Part shown: positions 3,545 through 47,540 of the stretch, piece by piece
Layout of the letters: every line of letters starts with the position of its first letter
How positions within the stretch are numbered: the first letter of the stretch is position 1
DNA from: Octopus sinensis
Lineage: Eukaryota
Direction: 5' to 3'
Assembly: GCF_006345805.1 (NCBI RefSeq)
Contig: NC_042997.1
Location: forward strand, 78,368,001-78,432,000
Length of the DNA stretch: 64,000 nt
Program-made: the position numbers and the translations under genes
Notes under the pieces: generated by a model
What the model saw: the letters and a program-made list of their open reading frames with translations, nothing else
Databases searched by the model: none
What the model was told of the DNA's origin: nothing

Positions 3545-3678
3545 TATGCGCTTGCTCTGGTATATATATACGTATATGTATATATATATGTAATGTGTGT
3601 AGGTATATGTATACATATATTTATATATATATGTATGTATATATATTTATATGTATGTATATATATGTATATATATAC

Positions 3679-3752
<74 letters not shown>

Positions 3753-3790
3753 CATATATATAGAGAGGGAGAGACATAGATAGATAGATA
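3545..3790. repeat. (TA)n/(TATG)n/(GATA)n microsatellite
   Basis: Read directly from the sequence. Confidence 0.95.
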
Positions 3791-3794
3791 GATA

Positions 3795-4510
3795 AAACAT
3801 ACTTGAAAGAGGATGCGTGGTGTTCAATCATGTAATAATGTAAATAATATATATATGCATATATATATACATATACATACGTATATGTACATACTTACAT
3901 CTAAACGTATATATATATATATGCATATGTGGACATAGCGCATCAGGAAACGTGGACAACAAAAAGTATGAAGCACGAGTTCATGGAACATGAACTATTC
4001 TTTCGAACAACGAAAGACACAAATGGAAAACAAAACAAACAACATAAAAAACAACCCTTCATCAGTTGTTGGTTGTTTCTCTAGTCTCGTATTTCGATCA
4101 TTTAGCAAAGCAAATTGAGGATTTTGCGGAGGGTCAAAATATGTAAAACAAATAGGACAGTGTAAACAAACAGGAAGGGCTACTAAGCCTAAACGAGGTT
4201 GTAGTGGCGAACGCGTAAATCAATCTAGGACAGGAGACAAGCAAGAACACGTCTTCCTTGTTCCGGGTACAACGGAGAGGAGGAAAGAAAGATGGCCGAT
4301 GGTCACGTGGGAGCCACGTGAGCAACGGAGGAGGAGTGAGAGAGAGAGAGAGAGTGACAGAGTAATAGGAGAGAATAGTGGAAGAAGAGAAAGTAAAAGA
4401 ATAAGAGAGAGAAAGAGAGAAAATGGAAGGGTAAAAAGATCGTAAAGAGGGCGCATCAGAATTAAGATAAAATTTCTTGGAAGAGAATGCGTGGAGTTCA
4501 ATCATATAAT
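3795..4510 (-). mobile_element. Unclassified element with an approximately 55-bp terminal direct repeat (period 674 bp), flanked by microsatellites
   Basis: aagaggatgcgtggtgttcaatcatgtaataatgtaaataat (~3807-3848) matches aagagaatgcgtggagttcaatcatataataatataaataat (~4481-4522). A minus-strand CTGATGA (4065->4059) and GAAA (4004->4001) are present but pair poorly. Confidence 0.5.
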
Positions 4511-4532
4511 AATATAAATAATATATATATAA

Positions 4533-4592
<60 letters not shown>

Positions 4593-4656
4593 TATTATAT
4601 ATATAATATATATATAATATATATATATATATAAATATATATATATATGTGTGTAT

Positions 4657-4700
<44 letters not shown>

Positions 4701-4854
4701 TATATATAATATAAATATATATATATATAAATATAAATATATATTATATATATATATATATATTATATATATATAAATATATATATAAATATAAATATAT
4801 ATATAATATAAATATATATAATAATATAAATATATATATATAAATATAAATATA

Positions 4855-4908
<54 letters not shown>

Positions 4909-5030
4909 AATATGTACATATGTATACATGCATATATATATATATATTATTTATATTATTATTATTATTATATATATATACACGAATATATATATATGTA
5001 TATATGTATATATATGTATATATAGATATA
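4505..5030. repeat. Long (TA)n-type low-complexity tract
   Basis: About 400 bp that is almost entirely A/T, followed by degenerate (TA/TG)n. Confidence 0.95.
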
Positions 5031-5179
5031 GGCTCTATGGTAAGTAGCTTGCTTACTGCTTACCTGCTTCTAGGTTCAGTCTCACTCCGTAGCACCTTGG
5101 GCAAATGTCTTCTACTGTAGCCTGGGGCCGACTAAAGCCTTGCGTGTGGATTTGGTAAACGGAAACTGAAAGTAGCCTT

Positions 5180-5181
<2 letters not shown>
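5028..5181 (+). mobile_element. tRNA-derived SINE family A, 5' half
   Basis: ggttcagtctcact..caccttgggcaaatgtcttctact..ggaaactgaaag is shared with 5575-5742(-), 29235-29383 and 35944-36100. Confidence 0.8.
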
Positions 5182-5214
<33 letters not shown>

Positions 5215-5227
5215 GTGTGTGTGTATG

Positions 5228-5268
<41 letters not shown>

Positions 5269-5285
5269 TATATATACTCTCACTC

Positions 5286-5488
5286 TTTACTCTTTTACTC
5301 GTTTCAGTCATTTGACTGCGGCCATGCTGGAGCACCGCCTTTAGTCGAGCAAATCGACCCCAGGACTTATTCTTTGTAACCCTAGTACTTATTCTACTGG
5401 TCCCTATTGCCGAACTGCTAAGTTACGGGGACGTAAACATACCAGCATCGGTTGTCAAGCGATGTTGGGGGAACAAACACAGACACAC

Positions 5489-5574
<86 letters not shown>

Positions 5575-5742
5575 CATCCGACGGGCTTCTTTCAGTTTCC
5601 GTCTACCAAATCCACTCACAAGGCTTTGGTTGGCCAGGGGATATAGTAGAAGACATTTGCCCAAATTGTCACGCAGTGGGACTGAACCAATCCGGACCAT
5701 GTGGCTAATAAGCAAGCTACTCACCACACAGCCACTCCTGCG
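5286..5742 (-). mobile_element. SINE family A, full-length copy with internal (CA)n(TA)n
   Basis: Head 5742->5575, microsatellite, then tail 5490->5286. The layout matches 35944-36335. Confidence 0.8.
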
Positions 5743-5744
5743 CC

Positions 5745-5808
<64 letters not shown>

Positions 5809-5814
5809 TATATA

Positions 5815-6920
5815 AACTTAGATATGTTTCGACCAAAGATTGGTCCAGGCCATGTCTAACTTAATAGCACCACCTGATAGGATTATTCGTATCCTGTTTA
5901 AGTCAGGTTTTGTTTATGGTCCTTTCAAGTAGTGAGTTTTTGTTGGAATCTTTGAAGGAATCTTTGAAGGAATCTATCCAGACTCCGTTTAAAATTGATG
6001 GGATCCTTTTCCTCTTTGATCTCTTTTGGGACAATGTTAAATAGGGCAGGGCCTGTTGAGGAAAAGAAATTATGTTGCAGTGTACATGTATGCTGTGATC
6101 TTGAATTGGGCAGGGGACGTATGGCCCGTGGTCCTAGTCTTGGATGAACCTTGAAGCTAATGTTCAGTTCGTTTGGGCAAAGTTGGCGGTATATTCTCCA
6201 CATCGTACAAATGATGTACCGCTCACGGCAACGCTGGAGAGAGTAAAGTTTCAAGGCTTTAAGGCGATCCCAATAATCGAGAGCAGCCATGCCTTCAATT
6301 CGTTTAGTGAGTGCCCTCTGGGGTGATTCAGTCCTCGAGATGTTTTGTCTTGTATGGGGAGACCACAGTGGGCAGCAGTATTCGAGGTGTGGCCGAACAA
6401 AGAAGGAGAAAAGTGGTATGATGACACCTTGTTCTCTGGACCGGAAAGTTCTTAAGATCCAGGAACTCATCCTACGAGCTATATCGACCTTCTTGTTGAT
6501 GTGTGCACTCCAACTGAGATCGTCATCAACAATTACACCCAGGTCTCTGATATTGTTAGAGGCTGTGAGCGGTTCCCCTGAAGGAAGAGAGTATGGCTGT
6601 TTTAGTGAGGAATTTCTTCCAAAATGCATCAGCTCAAATTTTCCCTCGTTCAGTTGCATTTTGTTTCTGTATGCCCATTGACTCACCGCATATAGATCAG
6701 ACTGGAGTTGAGTTTGGTCTGCTTCTTCATTGACGATTTGCTGGAGCTTAGTGTCATCAGCAAATATTTTCACTTTGCAGCAATGTACGACACTGGAAAG
6801 GTCGTTTATGTAAATTATGAAGAGTAGCTGACCCAAGACAGTCCCCTGGGGGACACCGATGGTGACTTTTGCTGGGCTTGAGTGGACTCCATCAACTACA
6901 ACATGTTGTGTTCATATATG
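5815..6920 (-). mobile_element. 5'-truncated CR1/L2-group LINE (RT C-terminal half plus 3' UTR)
   Basis: ORF 5925-6836: GVPQGTVLGQLLFIIYINDL, FADDTKL, RDLGVIVD, VRPHLEYCCPLWSP. Confidence 0.9.
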
Positions 6921-7615: not shown

Positions 7616-8965
7616 TCACCTTGATCACCTTGACCAACCAGTCTGTCAAGCGTCCATTTTACACCGCTGGTCACAGCACGCTGTCCACTCCTCTATGGAT
7701 CGCGCCTTTCTCATCCACGTGATCCCAATCGTCCTCCTGAAATCGTAACTCCACCGTCGTGGAGGCCTTCTGGGTGGTCATTTCCGCTCGCGCGGGTACC
7801 ACTCGACAACTGCGCGGATCCACCCATTATCGGTGAGCCGGGCGACGTGTCCAGCTCATCTAAACTTGCTGCGTGTATACTCTGCGATGACATCCCTCAC
7901 GCCGGACTTCTTTCTGATAATCTCACTACTGATGTGCTCTCTCAACGAGATACCAAGCATTGACCTTTCCATGGCTCTTTGAGCCATTACCAGTCTCTGC
8001 TCTTCTCTCTTTGTAGTAGCCCATGTTTCACTACCATATAACATTGCAGGTAGAACTGTACTGTTGATGAGGTTGGCGCGGGTGGTCCTGTCCAACTTTC
8101 CCTTGAGCACATTCCTTATGCCATTAAACGCCTTCCATCCGGCCCTTACTCTCTGTGAGATCTCCTTTTCGATATCTCGGCACATATTCACTTTGAGGCA
8201 TACCGGATGGAGAAGCTCTTGAAGGTCACAGAGGAAAAGAAGAACTACCGACCCATATGCCTGCTGTCTCACGTGTACAAGCTGCTTACAAAGATAATGC
8301 TGAACAGGTTATCACGTCATCTCGACGAACAACCGAGGGAACAAGCCGGCTTCCGGAAGAACTACAGCACGATGGGCCATATATTTACTCTAACACAACT
8401 GCTTGAGCGAGCGAATGAGTACAAGCTGCCTCTTTGCGTTGCGTTTGTAGACTATGAGAAGGCCTTCGATAGCGTCGAAACCAACGCAGTGCTGAACTCG
8501 CTGCAGAGGCAAGGAGTCGAGGCGCAATATGTGCAACTGCTCAGGAAGGCAAATTCCGGATGCACCACCGACATAGCTCTACTGTCATCACCCGTACGTG
8601 TGCCGGTCGAGAAGGGAGTAAAGCAAGGAGATACGATCTCCCCAAAACTTTTCACCGCATGTCTCGAACAGATCATTAGAGGCATCGAATGGCAAGGCGG
8701 TGTCAACATCAATGGCGAGCTCCTCACCCACCACCGTTTCGCTGATGGCATCGTACTCATCGCTGAAACCACGGATCAGCTTCAGACCATGCTGACGGAT
8801 CTTGACATCAAAAGCTCTGCAGTAGGTCTCAAGATGCACCGCATGAAAACGCAGTTCATGCGGTCAGACAACGTACCAACAGGTCGAATGGTGATCAGCA
8901 GTGATGAAATAGAGGAGGTAAAGGAATATGTCTACCTGGGACAGGAAGTGAATATGTGCCGAGAT

Positions 8966-8968
<3 letters not shown>
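7616..8968. mobile_element. RTE-clade LINE with inverted 5' portion: 3' half on minus (8188->7616), RT core on plus (~8205-8968)
   Basis: Plus: NYRPICLLS, EQAGFR, FVDYEKAFDSV, GVKQGDTISPKLF, RFADGIVL, YVYLG. Minus: LPAMLYGSETW, RWAGHVAR, with a (tcaaggtga)2 3' tail. Confidence 0.9.
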
Positions 8969-9043
<75 letters not shown>

Positions 9044-9047
<4 letters not shown>

Positions 9048-12651: not shown

Positions 12652-14250
12652 ATGGAAAATGTTTCCAAAGATATTTTGATGGGACCATCTCCTGTCGGTG
12701 GAGATAGCGTGGAGTTTTGGAAATATCTAAAAGTATTACCAGTCATTACTCTAACTTTAATTACACTTATTGGTAACGGACTGGTCACTATAATGTTTAT
12801 TCGCTACAAACAACTTCGGAAATGTAAGAACATTTTCATTGTCAGCCTTGCATTTGCTGACTTTCTCATTGGATGTACGATGCCTGTTTACATACTTGAA
12901 GAACTAGGAGGAAGATTATGGTCAATACAAGGGCCTTTCTGCAGGGTGTTCCTCATGTTTCGATATTCATTGTTCTATATCTCTCTACTTAGTATCATGC
13001 TGATATCTGTAGATCGATGGTGGTCTATAAACCACCCATTTTCCTATCGAGTCCGTCAAAGCAGAAAACTTGCTCTCTGGTCTGTTTTGTTCAGCTGGGG
13101 ACTTAGCTTTGCTATTTATGCTCCACCAACACTTGGATGGAATGATGTCGACCATAGTAAAAACCAAGTAGTTGTCACACCAAAAACATTGTTTTCTATA
13201 TTATCATCTACCGTTGGACCAATTGCTTCTGAAACTACACCTTCACAACCTGTAATCTCCATTGATAGTACCCAAGTGACTTGCCATGCCCCATTTGAAA
13301 ATAATCTAATCTTCATTGCGTTGACTTCTATTATCTTATATTTGTTACCGTTACTAGCTTTGTGGATAATTAACGCTAGTATTTATTTTAAGATTAGTCA
13401 GCGGAAAGGAATGAAAATTCGACGATCTCTAAGCACATCGGACACTTTCTTCCTCAATTACCGAAAATCATCCTCAGAATCGGATACTATGGGGCAGCTG
13501 GAAGAGTTTCTTGACAACATGCTACCAAATATTCATCGGAAAGGAAGCAATGTTGGTGGTATGTTAATATGTGATGAAAAAAGAAACTCTTTTGTGGGTC
13601 CTTTATCAACGAGACGAAATCCACTAAGTCACTATGTATCGAATACCTCAGCATTCGCACAATATGCTCGAATCATTCAACATAAGAGACATGTTTCTTT
13701 CGATGCTACTGGAATGATGATGCCTGTTACAAAACAGAAGCGATACTCTATTATTGGGTTAACCAAGGGTGGAAGCACCAGTAGTAATAGCAGCAGCAGC
13801 AGTAGCGGTTCCTCCAGCTCCGGTAGCCGTAGTGGTTTGGCTCTGCGCCGTCAAAGTGATGATTTGGTTAAAGACATGTTCGTCAAACAGGACAAGAAAG
13901 CTGCCTGCTCGCTGGGCTTTCTTGTACTAGTTTTCACACTTTGTTGGACACCATACACCGTGTGCAGCATTTTGAGATCTGCCTACGGGAGTTGGTATAT
14001 ACCGTCTCTTGCTATGACAATAAGTTATTGGGTTCTCGCCACCAACTCTGCCATCAATCCTTTCCTTTATGGCCTCTGCAACAGTGACTTCCGTAAAGCA
14101 TTTAGGTCTTGGTGTAAAAATCGAAACTCTAAACAAAGACGCTTCGAAGAAGCTCTTCTTTATTATGGAATCCCACAAAATAATGAACCGGAAGTAATAC
14201 ATGAACAAACTTCTTCGACTCCGTCCCATGATTCCCGCAAAATTCCTTGA
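12652..14250 (+). CDS. Single-exon class A (rhodopsin-like) GPCR, aminergic-like (histamine H3/H4 or muscarinic-like), 532 aa
   Basis: Seven TMs with GN1.50, SLAFAD2.50, C3.25, DRW, W4.50, P5.50, KKAACSLG..CWTPY, YWVLATNSAINPFLY, helix 8 FRKAF, an N-terminal NVS sequon and a long Ser-rich ICL3. Confidence 0.95.
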   Translation: MENVSKDILMGPSPVGGDSVEFWKYLKVLPVITLTLITLIGNGLVTIMFIRYKQLRKCKNIFIVSLAFADFLIGCTMPVYILEELGGRLWSIQGPFCRVFLMFRYSLFYISLLSIMLISVDRWWSINHPFSYRVRQSRKLALWSVLFSWGLSFAIYAPPTLGWNDVDHSKNQVVVTPKTLFSILSSTVGPIASETTPSQPVISIDSTQVTCHAPFENNLIFIALTSIILYLLPLLALWIINASIYFKISQRKGMKIRRSLSTSDTFFLNYRKSSSESDTMGQLEEFLDNMLPNIHRKGSNVGGMLICDEKRNSFVGPLSTRRNPLSHYVSNTSAFAQYARIIQHKRHVSFDATGMMMPVTKQKRYSIIGLTKGGSTSSNSSSSSSGSSSSGSRSGLALRRQSDDLVKDMFVKQDKKAACSLGFLVLVFTLCWTPYTVCSILRSAYGSWYIPSLAMTISYWVLATNSAINPFLYGLCNSDFRKAFRSWCKNRNSKQRRFEEALLYYGIPQNNEPEVIHEQTSSTPSHDSRKIP

Positions 14251-16295: not shown

Positions 16296-16626
16296 GCAGG
16301 CAATATTTATATCATGTATATAGTAAGGAACAAATTGAAACGAGATTTCTTATTTACATACCGTTATGCTGGTATATATGTGTGTATGTGTATGTGAGTG
16401 TGTACGAAAGGAGAAGACAAATGGTAATAAAAGAGAAAGAGAGAGAGATTAAAATTGTTGTTGGTCTTTCGTTGTATATAGTGTTGACAAATTGATTAAA
16501 ATATATACTTATAAATCCTAAGTATGTTTCTATAGTTGTAGATCCTGGTACGGGAAACAAACAGATGTATTACGAATGTATGTGCGCGTATGTATACATA
16601 CAAGAAAACACACACACACACATATT

Positions 16627-16733
<107 letters not shown>

Positions 16734-17221
16734 TATATATACATACATACATATATATATATGTATCTATGTATTTATATGCGCATGTATATATATATAT
16801 ATATACACAAGCACTCACATACTCTTTCACTTTTTCTCTCTCTCTCTCTCTCTCACACACACATACATGTATGTATATATATATATACTATAAACACTTT
16901 CTCGTACACACACATACAACACACACACACAGCTATTAATGTATTGTATACAAATGGTTGCTGTGAATTAGCAGTCTTAATAAGAAGCTATAATAATATC
17001 GACGAGTTCTTCCTGCCAGTTAACTTACTCCAATTGACCGTCCACTAACCATAGTTTTGTTTCTAGATCTACCAACATAACTAGCGCAAGCATCTCCGCT
17101 GTCACCATTACCTACAACAGCATTCATAGGTTTGGTAATACCAAACCTAAGCCATTATACCAAAGCCATTATAAAACGGCGAGTCGGCACAATCATTTGT
17201 ACGGCGAGCAAAATGCTTAAA

Positions 17222-39844: not shown

Positions 39845-39895
<51 letters not shown>

Positions 39896-40013
39896 CAATT
39901 AAGGAACGGCCATAATAGGCCATTCACCCACTAGAAATAACAGCCAAAGCTTCTACCGCAAATAAAGATTAATTCCGTAAACAGGAGAAAATTAAAAAAA
40001 CATTTACCCTGTA

Positions 40014-40120
40014 ATTTCTTGTACGGTATACCGTTTCATCCGCTGTTTAATGGCAAACCAACCTGATTAAATTAAATCAAGCCAATCTTCCATAAGCCCT
40101 CGGATTCTTCAGCAAGAAAT
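40014..40120 (-). ncRNA. Type I hammerhead ribozyme, 490-bp family copy 1
   Basis: Reverse complement of the motif at 41520-41626. Confidence 0.88.
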
Positions 40121-40505
40121 AGCTCAAGTCGGAGCAGATATATACACGAGGCACACCCAATCTTGCCAAGTCAATATCTGACCTAAAATTTTCAAATCGT
40201 CGCACTCGCGCCAAATTTATCGGCAGCAAATAAATATCAGCCGTCGATTCCATTACGGAATTAACCAAAAAATTCATAATTAATCAATATAGGGTGGCAA
40301 GGAAAATTTTGTAGAATTTTATTGCCACCAGCGGCCCAGCGGGAAAAAAATTAAATAGTCATAGACCATTTTTAAGTTCAACATTAACAATTAAGGAACG
40401 GCCATAATAGGCCATTCACCCACTAGAAATAACAGCCAAAGCTTCTACCGCAAATAAAGATTAATTCCGTAAACAGGAGAAAATTAAAAAAACATTTACC
40501 CTGTA

Positions 40506-40612
40506 ATTTCTTGTACGGTATACCGTTTCATCCGCTGTTTAATGGCAAACCAACCTGATTAAATTAAATCAAGCCAATCTTCCATAAGCCCTCGGATTCT
40601 TCAGCAAGAAAT
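40506..40612 (-). ncRNA. Type I hammerhead ribozyme, 490-bp family copy 2
   Basis: Reverse complement of the motif at 41520-41626. Confidence 0.88.
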
Positions 40613-40995
40613 AGCTCAAGTCGGAGCAGATATATACACGAGGCACACCAATCTTGCCAAGTCATATCTGACCTAAAATTTTCAAATCGTCGCACTCGCG
40701 CCAAATTTATCGGCAGCAAATAAATATCAGCCGTCGATTCCATTACGGAATTAACCAAAAAATTCATAATTAATCAATATAGGGTGGCAAGGAAAATTTT
40801 GTAGAATTTTATTGCCACCAGCGGCCCAGCGGGAAAAAAATTAAATAGTCATAGACCATTTTTAAGTTCAACATTAACAATTAAGGAACGGCCATAATAG
40901 GCCATTCACCCACTAGAAATAACAGCCAAAGCTTCTACCGCAAATAAAGATTAATTCCGTAAACAGGAGAAAATTAAAAAAAACATTACCCTGTA

Positions 40996-41102
40996 ATTTC
41001 TTGTACGGTATACCGTTTCATCCGCTGTTTAATGGCAAACCAACCTGATTAAATTAAATCAAGCCAATCTTCCATAAGCCCTCGGATTCTTCAGCAAGAA
41101 AT
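40996..41102 (-). ncRNA. Type I hammerhead ribozyme, 490-bp family copy 3
   Basis: Reverse complement of the motif at 41520-41626. Confidence 0.88.
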
Positions 41103-41519
41103 AGCTCAAGTCGGAGCAGATATATACACGAGGCACACCCAATCTTGCCAAGTCAATATCTGACCTAAAATTTTCAAATCGTCGCACTCGCGCCAAATTT
41201 ATCGGCAGCAAATAAATATCAGCCGTCGATTCCATTACGGAATTAACCAAAAAATTCATAATTAATCAATATAGGGTGGCAAGGAAAATTTTGTAGAATT
41301 TTATTGCCGCTGGTGGCAATAAAATTCTACAAAATTTTCCTTGCCACCCTATATTGATTAATTATGAATTTTTTGGTTATTCCGTAATGGAATCGACGGC
41401 TGATATTTATTTGCTGCCGATAAATTTGGCGCGAGTGCGACGATTTGAAAATTTTAGGTCAGATATTGACTTGGCAAGATTGGGTGTGCCTCGTGTATAT
41501 ATCTGCTCCGACTTGAGCT

Positions 41520-42440: not shown

Positions 42441-43294
42441 ATGTATGTGATGGGTAAATTATCGCTATTTTATATTTTTTATTTCGCGCATATACATTGT
42501 TCGTTTTGGATTTTGCCGACTATACAGTATAGTAGGGTCAGTTGGGTACTGCCTGTGAGAGAAGCAGCTCCATGATGCTATTCAGTCTGTCAGAAATTTG
42601 GAAACGACATGCTATACTACTTTGCATTCGCGCCGGAAGCTCCAGTACGAATAGATTGTAAACTCACAGAGCAACAGTTGACGTGCCGTTCCCCCAAAAC
42701 ATGTACCGAGAGTGCTAAAAATCAAGCATCCAGTCAACATCATAGTGTTTGGAGTGGTCACTAGTAATGGCGACGTTATACGTCCATTAATCTCCCCACA
42801 CAGCCTCAGACTCAACACGGAGGCCTACATCAAGTGCCTGGAAGAGGTAGTGCTGCCCTGGGTCAAGAGGGTGGCTGCTCGAAGACCCTATGACAGACAA
42901 CAGGACTCTGCATCATGTCACACAAGCGGGAGAACCCAGTCATGGCTGTCAGACAATTTTTGCGGCCACATCAGTCCTAACTCCCCAGACTGCAACCCCC
43001 TTGATTATCATTTGTGGGGCGCAGTTGCGCGAGAGACCAACGAAACCCTTTGTAATACCGAAGAGGAACTGAAGGCAAGGATTATGACAGTATTCAATAA
43101 CTTAAACAATGAGACCGCCCAGAAGATTTGCAGGAGATTCCGAAGTTATCTGGCGGTCGAGATTGAAGCCAATGGCAATTTTATTGAATCATTACTATTT
43201 CAAGATATTTTTTATGTAATTTTGGTAAATATATCTATTAAAATGAGATCTCAGTGTTATTTTCATTTTTGTGTAATATAATCATCGCACCCTG
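42441..43294 (+). mobile_element. Internally deleted maT/DD37D-like (Tc1/mariner) transposon
   Basis: ORF 42712-43281: KHPVNIIVFGVV, QQDSASCH, PNSPDCNPLDY, ANGNFIE. Right end catcgcaccctg|TA; left TIR decayed. Confidence 0.85.

Positions 43295-46633: not shown

Positions 46634-46635
<2 letters not shown>
46363..46635. mobile_element. Fold-back element of the 9044 family: 98-bp tail plus 85-bp perfect arms (46461-46545 / 46551-46635), in (TA)n
   Basis: Same tail as 41935. The arms are reverse complements around a 5-nt loop. Confidence 0.88.
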
Positions 46636-46728
<93 letters not shown>

Positions 46729-46737
46729 TATATATAT

Positions 46738-46820
<83 letters not shown>

Positions 46821-46829
46821 GTATATATA

Positions 46830-47540
46830 TATGTGTTATTTTGCTTCAGTGTTATTATTTTTTACCTTAATCTTAATCTTATTTCGGCCAGAGTTCTTTC
46901 GTCACACTCCTGTGACCGCATCAGTGGTCCTTTGTTTTCTTCTTACTTATTTGTGTCTCTCCTTACTAACCGTCAGCCATTTTCTATTTCTATTGTATGA
47001 CTTCATTTGCGCATGCTTATATCTCTATGTGCGTTTATGTTTATTTAGTGTGTGTGAGTGGGGGGATGCCTGTAATATTTGTATCTTCTGTTGATATATG
47101 TTTATGTAATTTGTATTTTGCTTTTGTTGTTTTTGTTTATGTTTATTCTTATTTTGTTCATGTGTTTACATCCACTTATTATTATCATTACATATGCTTG
47201 TATGTATGTATGTATGTATGTATGTATGTATGTATGTATGTATGTATGTATGTATGTATGTATGTATAACAACAATACTAGTAATAACAATAATAAATCG
47301 AATCGAAAAAAAAATATATATATATAGTTATTTATTTCTATTAGTTTATTTATCTGTGTATTTATTATGTTTTCAGGATCCTCTATCATCATATGTTGTG
47401 GTGTGTGTTAGTGCTCCATTCTAGTTTTCTATTCAGGCTAGGTTTATTTTCTATTATGTGTGTAGCTTCTGTAATTTGTCTAATTGTTGCATCTGATCTA
47501 TGTGTGGATAATATTTTAATTTCTATGTTATTGATTGATA
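46830..47540 (-). mobile_element. Penelope-like element 3' end: GIY-YIG C-terminal remnant followed by a pLTR with a degenerate hammerhead (46930->46886)
   Basis: ILSTHRSDATIRQITEATHIIENKPSLNRKLEW resembles PLE endonuclease C-termini. Motif GGACCA-CTGATGC-G-GTCAC AGGAGT GTGAC-GAAA-GAAC-TC-TGGCC. Confidence 0.65.

Follow-up and report, generated by a model that had tools for sequence, protein, structure and literature searches.

The 64,000-nucleotide stretch of the Octopus sinensis genome analysed here (contig NC_042997.1, positions 78,368,001 to 78,432,000; hereafter the window) carries on its forward strand a single-exon coding sequence, running from ATG to stop at 12652–14250, for a class A G-protein-coupled receptor (GPCR) of 532 residues. 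This receptor is an orphan of aminergic type in which position 3.32, the site of the amine-anchoring aspartate, is occupied by arginine (Arg104, codon CGA, 12961–12963, in the context LMFRY). Aspartate 3.32 is the textbook determinant of amine recognition and is used routinely in classifying invertebrate receptors and in transferring ligand names to them. We find that a cationic residue at 3.32 characterizes a conserved clade of mollusc receptors marked by a DRWW motif, and the octopus protein is very probably a functional member of that clade. The best overall explanation of these observations, although a little short of an even chance, is that such a receptor would use R104 to anchor a small anionic or hydrogen-bond-accepting ligand.

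The protein has the architecture of an intact class A receptor. Pfam 7tm_1 (PF00001) matches residues 41–473 with E=1.1e-45 over the complete profile (positions 1–260 of 260), and the Pfam matches to Srsx and Srx are only weak side-hits of 7tm_1. The AlphaFold2 (AF2) model contains seven transmembrane helices (TM) followed by helix 8, with a predicted local confidence (pLDDT) of about 90 in the core; the N-terminus is short (about 24 residues), and the second extracellular loop (ECL2) is long (about 166–216) and poorly predicted or disordered at 167–208. Because R122 of the DRW motif (residues 121–123) fixes position 3.50, residue 104 is position 3.32. An ungapped HMMER alignment with the human histamine H3 receptor (H3R) places R104 opposite the aspartate of LVVDY, L229 opposite E5.46 and A463 opposite W7.43. 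The micro-switches of class A receptors are all present: D2.50 (D70); DRW within DRWW (3.49–3.52; 13012–13023), the form that the DRY motif takes in the clade; CWTP, the toggle-switch motif (6.47–6.50; residues 431–434; 13942–13953), in which C431, W432 and P434 are invariant or nearly so in the clade; NPFLY (7.49–7.53; residues 469–473; 14056–14070), assigned from the sequence and the clade alignment; and the pair of C97 (3.25; TGC, 12940–12942) and C211, the presumed partners linking TM3 and ECL2, of which the first is invariant and the second near-invariant in the clade alignments. Leu229 (5.46; 13336–13338) lies ahead of P233 (5.50) at a site that is Glu in H3/H4 receptors, and Ala463 (7.43; GCC, 14038–14040) occupies a site where 108 of the 112 nearest aminergic receptors carry Tyr or Trp. 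All of these landmarks lie on the forward strand. The original prediction, made from the sequence alone, had located C3.25, R3.32, R3.50, L5.46, A7.43 and the CGA codon at these positions and had called the activation motifs intact, and we recovered each of them as described.

Its further claim that the protein is an aminergic-type receptor is borne out by the 7tm_1 match and by the closest solved relatives, since the best 60 PDB sequence matches and the best 50 Foldseek matches are all aminergic. In both sequence and fold the nearest are H3R, the muscarinic receptors M2, M3 and M5 and the serotonin receptor 5-HT7, with beta-1 and H1 receptors also among the fold matches of the AF2 model. H3R is the best solved match (E=1.6e-36; folds 7f61 and 8yuu, target-length TM-score 0.81–0.86), and octopus Y3.33, Y6.51 and T6.52 are common to both, as is E5.46 in many members of the clade. 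However, identity to H3/H4 receptors is only about 22%, DRWW stands in place of DRF or DRY, and the H3/H4 triad of D3.32, E5.46 and W7.43 is replaced in the octopus protein by R104, L229 and A463; clade-wide, the differences comprise R3.32, A, L or V for W7.43 and F or Y for W3.28, with L for E5.46 in cephalopods. Muscarinic receptors (M5, M3, M2 and M4) provide the second-best sequence and fold matches and share the long third intracellular loop (ICL3), and several clade members carry automated names of the type muscarinic M3/M4/M5-like. The octopus receptor nevertheless differs from them in lacking D3.32 and the full tyrosine lid (of which it has Y3.33 but not the complete set N6.52, Y7.39 and Y7.43) and in having S6.55 and A7.43. 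The octopus protein descends from aminergic receptors and would work as they do; it fails the pocket tests that define the family, those of D3.32, W3.28 and Y/W7.43, and therefore should not be classed among the histamine, muscarinic or monoamine receptors.

Homology searching recovered about 35 relatives at 33–47% identity, after which match quality dropped abruptly, to E of about 1e-22 for ordinary aminergic receptors. In a profile search of 1.84 billion representative sequences, scores within the family ran from 649 down to about 260 bits, and below them lay a plateau near 240 bits made up of receptors whose pocket fingerprints are of the H3/H4-like, H1-like, muscarinic and monoamine types. 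We tallied position 3.32 in 156 sequences with good coverage of the seven helices, including 39 members of the mollusc clade and 112 of the nearest aminergic receptors as background. Conservation of R3.32 in orthologues had been set as a test by the original prediction, and Arg or Lys is indeed found in 37 of the 39 clade members (36 R, 1 K), the other two having Leu and none Asp, whereas the background has Asp in 108 of 112 receptors, Lys in one and Arg in none. Two independent alignments (HMM-guided, i.e., built with a hidden Markov model, and MAFFT) agree on these tallies, and R104, D121, R122 and W123 are all invariant in an alignment of 25 full-length members. Trp at 3.51 is found in every clade sequence (100%) but in none of the 112 background receptors (0%); the WW pair at 3.51–3.52 occurs in 42 of 52 tabulated clade sequences, 48 of which have letters at both positions. 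The octopus protein displays all hallmarks of the clade, namely the cationic residue at 3.32, W3.51–W3.52 and the ICL3 motifs KIRRSLS and R(R/K)QSDDLV..QDKKAA.

All named members of the clade are molluscs and represent four classes: Polyplacophora (Liolophura), Bivalvia, Gastropoda and Cephalopoda. The occurrence of R3.32 in a chiton, bivalves and gastropods rules out a peculiarity of Octopus alone, and the clade dates back at least to the mollusc crown group. In neighbour-joining trees, the only kind calculated (200 bootstraps, background sequences unnamed), the whole DRW(W) family was supported at 94.5% with the HMM-guided alignment and 92.5% with MAFFT, and the mollusc R clade at 90% and 95.5%, respectively. 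The family thereby forms a clade apart from H3/H4 receptors (92–94%), with H3/H4-like sequences as its neighbours at 41%. On this evidence the clade would sit inside the aminergic-type radiation, nearest to histamine H3/H4-like and muscarinic branches. Its closest named relative outside molluscs is a protein of the annelid Owenia fusiformis with Glu at 3.32, and a small outer group of relatives has K, F or S there. With the Owenia protein as query, only seven proteins came back at E≤1e-30, and no further named family member from outside molluscs was among them. Parsimony suggests an ancestral acidic residue at 3.32 and a switch to a basic one on the mollusc stem, for which GAA to AAA to AGA to CGA offers a possible path in single-base steps. 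The original prediction had spoken of a repurposed receptor. The reversal of charge at its core is conserved, but the emphasis shifts, since this is an ancient mollusc-wide clade and not a recently repurposed H3 receptor.

Automated annotation has given clade members at least seven kinds of names, including H3-like, H1, M3/M4/M5-like, 5-HT1A(-like), tyramine Ser-2-like, TAAR2 and 'No18' (surveyed in P0002, P0004, P0005, P0013, P0015, P0016, P0024, P0025, P0110, P0131 and P0144). With a cationic residue conserved at 3.32 in the clade, labels of the kind 'histamine H3-like', 'muscarinic M5-like', '5-HT1A-like' or 'tyramine Ser-2-like' cannot be relied on here, and their mixture warns against assigning ligands by best hit. 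Counts of histaminergic and cholinergic receptors in molluscs, as used in cephalopod neurobiology and in studies of bivalve development, may consequently be inflated. A 2026 bivalve preprint, for instance, counts several 'HSR3' receptors by orthology, some of which may belong to the present clade. A full-text literature search, whose coverage is incomplete so that absence is not proof, yielded no prior description of an aminergic-like clade with R3.32.

The gene is genuine, ancient and under constraint, and what has been conserved at 3.32 is the positive charge. Its coding sequence and flanks are 100% identical in GCA_006345805.1 (record CM016859.1), and the copy in GCA_951406725.2 differs by 2 nucleotides and encodes the identical protein; we take these to be assemblies of O. 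sinensis and O. vulgaris, respectively. The earlier argument that CGA is not a single read error holds, as this codon differs from both GAT and GAC at all three bases and the same protein is found in the two assemblies. The orthologue in Argonauta hians, named 'histamine H3 receptor-like' by NCBI, also has 532 residues in an intact open reading frame (ORF) and is 89% identical. Between Octopus and Argonauta, nonsynonymous divergence (dN) is 0.060 and synonymous divergence (dS) 1.08 by the Nei-Gojobori method, and the resulting dN/dS of 0.056, falling to 0.028 in the seven-helix core and rising to 0.089 in loops and termini, answers the proposed check of selection with strong purifying selection. 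Codon 104 itself has changed synonymously from CGA in Octopus to CGG in Argonauta, and Arg is kept. A third, more distant cephalopod copy (L004; ENA ERZ21867824, ctg117965l, 4220–6005) is about 72–75% identical, with synonymous sites saturated relative to the octopods (proportion of differing synonymous sites, pS, 0.875; of nonsynonymous sites, pN, 0.19), and it has Lys (AAA) at 3.32 in the context LMFKY; it is this replacement of Arg by Lys that identifies positive charge as the conserved property. The reading frame of L004 is broken by a single 1-nucleotide insertion in TM5, its two halves being otherwise intact and highly conserved, and this frameshift could reflect either a fault in the assembly or a recent lesion or pseudogene. 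Other orthologues lie on short Logan contigs whose RNA and DNA source runs are indistinguishable, so they were not counted as evidence of expression.

The gene is single-copy in cephalopods, where we saw no lineage-specific expansion, and it is orthologous across molluscs. This is the pattern of a receptor for an endogenous ligand rather than of an expanded chemoreceptor family, and the sensory role that the original prediction had entertained finds no support.

To see which residues set the clade apart, we asked where a residue reaches 80% conservation or more among its members but is shared by no more than 15% of the background. Six positions passed, R3.32, S3.42, W3.51, a Phe in the second intracellular loop (ICL2), G7.54 and a Trp in helix 8, and only R3.32 lies within the ligand pocket. 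Around it the amine site is remodelled: W3.28 of the background is Y or F in the clade and never W (Phe in octopus), 7.43, Tyr or Trp in the background, is L, A or V in 32 of 39 members, and bulkier hydrophobic residues appear at 3.36 (C/S to L/F), 3.37 (T/N to Y/F) and 7.42 (G/C to L). The octopus protein keeps W6.48 and Y6.51 and has T at 6.52 as in H3/H4. Other pocket positions vary among paralogues, namely 3.33 (Y/H/Q/C/D), 5.46 (E/Q/L/M), 6.51 (H/Y/F), 6.52, 6.55, 7.35 and 7.39, yet these variable positions are identical between Octopus and Argonauta. One charged residue held constant amid variable neighbours resembles the pattern that D3.32 forms in amine receptors, here with the sign reversed. 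At 5.46, 16 of the 39 members have E and 10 have Q, while all three cephalopods have L; most of the clade has kept E or Q at this site, and the cephalopods have lost it. In the octopus protein none of the tabulated deep-pocket positions is acidic, and the nearest acids, E83 and E84 (2.63 and 2.64), lie where TM2 reaches the extracellular side; 24 of the 39 clade members have E2.63, and the background is acidic there in 2%. A conserved acid forming an internal salt bridge with R3.32 was also considered and rejected: the deep pocket has none, with E5.46 confined to 16 of 39 members and E2.63, found in 24 of 39, placed at the helix end.

From these features we tentatively propose that the ligand may be an anionic or zwitterionic small molecule with R104 as its anchor, a proposal that deserves somewhat less than even confidence. 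In such a receptor, classical monoamines or acetylcholine would not be bound in the canonical manner, and the guanidinium group of R104 would provide a fixed anchor for an anionic group or a strong hydrogen-bond acceptor (carboxylate, phosphate or sulfate) on a small endogenous molecule. Positions 3.33, 5.46, 6.51, 6.52, 6.55, 7.35 and 7.39, which vary, would tune the choice of ligand in each paralogue, and in members that still have E5.46 the best fit would be a zwitterion, for example an amino acid, either free or conjugated to an amine. The signal would then be relayed through D2.50, DRW, CWxP and NPxxY and the long, Ser/Arg-rich ICL3. This loop (residues 259–397; 13426–13842) is predicted to be disordered (pLDDT <50). 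Its edges (13414–13434 and 13846–13905) bear KIRRSLS, a kinase-type site of basic residues and serine, RKSSS and R(R/K)QSDDLVKD..V.QDKKAA leading into TM6. According to the clade consensus, these edge motifs are conserved throughout the mollusc clade; between them lies a Ser-rich run of low complexity (residues ~376–394).

The proposed working principle has parallels in other receptors. In HCA1-3, SUCNR1, FFAR1-4 and GPR35 a pocket arginine pairs with the carboxylate of the ligand, the anchoring arginines being located at 3.29, 3.36, 5.39, 7.35 and 7.39. To our knowledge, none of these receptors derives from the aminergic branch. The likeness would be one of principle only, and is itself hypothetical, as there is no detectable specific homology: none of HCA, SUCNR1, FFAR or GPR35 appeared among the top 60 PDB sequence matches or the top 50 fold matches. 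As for suitable molecules, gamma-glutamyl-histamine is made by the central nervous system of Aplysia according to Stein and Weinreich (1983), as cited in PMC4472778, and it and simple amino acids are only candidates at this stage. A broader and more doubtful extension is that molluscs possess an unrecognised small-molecule transmitter or metabolite system served by a charge-mirrored offshoot of the aminergic receptors, whose Arg3.32 paralogues would hold the acidic group of the ligand. Paralogue-specific pocket residues would pick the individual ligand, the octopus would have retained one copy, and candidates would include amino acids, D-amino acids, histidine metabolites of the imidazole-acetate or urocanate type and the gamma-glutamyl amine conjugates of molluscan nervous tissue. 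The octopus gene is in any case a sharply defined target for deorphanisation, with R104 as the site for a mutational test. Identifying its ligand could uncover a previously unknown transmitter or metabolite signal in animals whose nervous systems are large, and a true switch would be a natural example of a GPCR pocket reversing the charge of its ligand.

Several points weigh against an anionic ligand. We infer its charge purely from the pocket. The nearest outgroup is H3/H4-like, a weak placement at about 41% bootstrap in both alignments. Acidic residues at 5.46 (16 of 39) or 2.63 (24 of 39) could hold an amine, and receptors for peptides and chemokines can also be cationic at 3.32, as in the gonadotropin-releasing hormone receptor (GnRHR) and CXCR1/2, where Lys3.32 reportedly makes a ligand or structural contact. 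Loss of D3.32 alone, to judge by analogy with schistosome receptors of the SmGPR type and with trace amine-associated receptors (TAARs), need not abolish the response to amines.

One alternative reading is that the protein is still a receptor for histamine or another cationic transmitter, bound through a non-canonical acid (E5.46 or, in octopus, E2.63/E2.64), with R3.32 in a structural or selectivity role. We consider this unlikely, albeit with precedents. The schistosome receptors SmGPR-1 and SmGPR-2 have Asn at 3.32 and respond to histamine (PMC3289605), and like the mollusc clade they form a lineage-restricted lophotrochozoan group of aminergic-like receptors that lost D3.32; by their published description they differ in being confined to schistosomes, in responding to histamine or dopamine and in the neutral residue at 3.32 (PMC3289605). 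Membership of the mollusc receptors in the SmGPR group, considered because that group too lacks D3.32, was set aside on the strength of its Asn and its confinement to schistosomes; no SmGPR-type sequence was identified among the matches examined, although no direct test of the relationship was made. The TAARs of teleost clade III are likewise of aminergic type with D3.32 lost and the charged anchor relocated, and they reportedly recognize amines from TM5 through D5.42 (PMC4695389); they belong to expanded olfactory families, in contrast to the single-copy cephalopod gene with its cationic 3.32. Within the mollusc clade itself, E or Q at 5.46 (16 and 10 of 39), the frequency of E2.63 compared with its 2% acidic background and an H3/H4-like nearest outgroup that bears E5.46 all agree with amine binding, as would the bivalve 'HSR3' genes if any of them fall in this clade. 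However, a full reversal of charge should repel an ammonium group, which the neutral Asn of the SmGPRs would not, the cephalopods have L5.46 and no acid at any tabulated deep-pocket position, and W3.28 and Y/W7.43 are lost throughout the clade.

A neuropeptide or other larger ligand, with the cationic residue at 3.32 touching a main-chain carbonyl, an acidic side chain or the carboxylate at the C-terminus of a peptide, would account for the conserved charge as well, and we regard it as quite unlikely. Molluscs do possess acidic neuropeptides, and the long, poorly predicted ECL2 would be compatible with such ligands. Lys3.32 of GnRHR, and that of CXCR1/2, reportedly contacts the ligand or forms a salt bridge within the receptor, but these peptide and chemokine receptors are distant members of class A, and the CXCR1 partner E7.39 is Y or F at 7.39 here. 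Moreover, the close relatives in sequence and fold are all small-molecule aminergic receptors, the N-terminus is short, the fixed anchor with its variable surround resembles small-molecule receptor families, and by pocket fingerprint no peptide-receptor family is found among the best 150 profile matches.

The charge at 3.32 might also serve the receptor itself. In H3/H4 receptors histamine bridges D3.32 and E5.46. By extension, the guanidinium of R3.32 could act as a built-in cation that pairs with E5.46 where present, leaving the receptor ligand-independent, constitutively active or regulated by phosphorylation of ICL3. The geometry is plausible in the 16 of 39 members that combine R3.32 with E5.46, RRSLS and RKSSS are strongly conserved in ICL3, and orphans that lack a ligand are on record, reportedly including BRS3 (PMC6422423). 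We judge this very unlikely nevertheless, as the partner is not conserved (Q, L or M at 5.46 in 16 of 39 and L in all three cephalopods) and the extracellular-facing pocket varies among paralogues while remaining the same in Octopus and Argonauta, which suggests tuning by a ligand rather than a closed pocket. Finally, an artefact of sequencing or assembly, or a pseudogene in decay, in which R104 would be meaningless, has a negligible chance and, the frameshift of L004 notwithstanding, is effectively refuted by the identical protein in two independent Octopus assemblies, the ORF intact in Octopus and Argonauta under purifying selection, R or K at 3.32 in four mollusc classes and the three base changes that separate CGA from an Asp codon.

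Some members of the clade depart from its common form while retaining R3.32. A divergent subgroup (P0128, P0129, P0131 and P0144) has D or E at 3.33, and in the same sequences D2.50 is replaced by Gly and DRW by ERW or KRW, so that both the sodium site and the activation core are altered. Its named members are from the sacoglossan sea slugs Elysia chlorotica, Elysia marginata and Plakobranchus ocellatus; P0129 is nameless. In P0033 (Saccostrea echinata), P0114 and P0029 the toggle-switch Trp6.48 is replaced by Arg. The P0114 cluster comprises 202 Logan members on contigs of 2–4 kb and is very abundant in public run assemblies.

An Rfam scan of the whole window gave no matches, and a 189-residue ORF at 42712–43281 (forward strand), which by eye resembled the C-terminal part of a Tc1/mariner-type transposase, was unsupported, with no Pfam match at E≤0.001. 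Fragments of reverse transcriptase from a non-LTR element or other retroelement lie at 5925–6836 (reverse strand) and 7856–9046 (both strands), with the receptor gene about 3.6 kb downstream; Pfam RVT_1 matches 8207–9046 on the forward strand at 4.7e-31, and 5925–6836 on the reverse strand weakly at 4.6e-4, below the curated cut-off. Long microsatellites of the (TA)n/(ATAT)n type at 3561–3762, 4504–5030, 16622–16805 and 46634–46832 are the source of spurious 'YIYIYI' ORFs. Two tandem repeats with 99% identity between copies occupy 83–1072 (454 bp, 2.2 copies) and 39891–41308 (490 bp, 2.9 copies).

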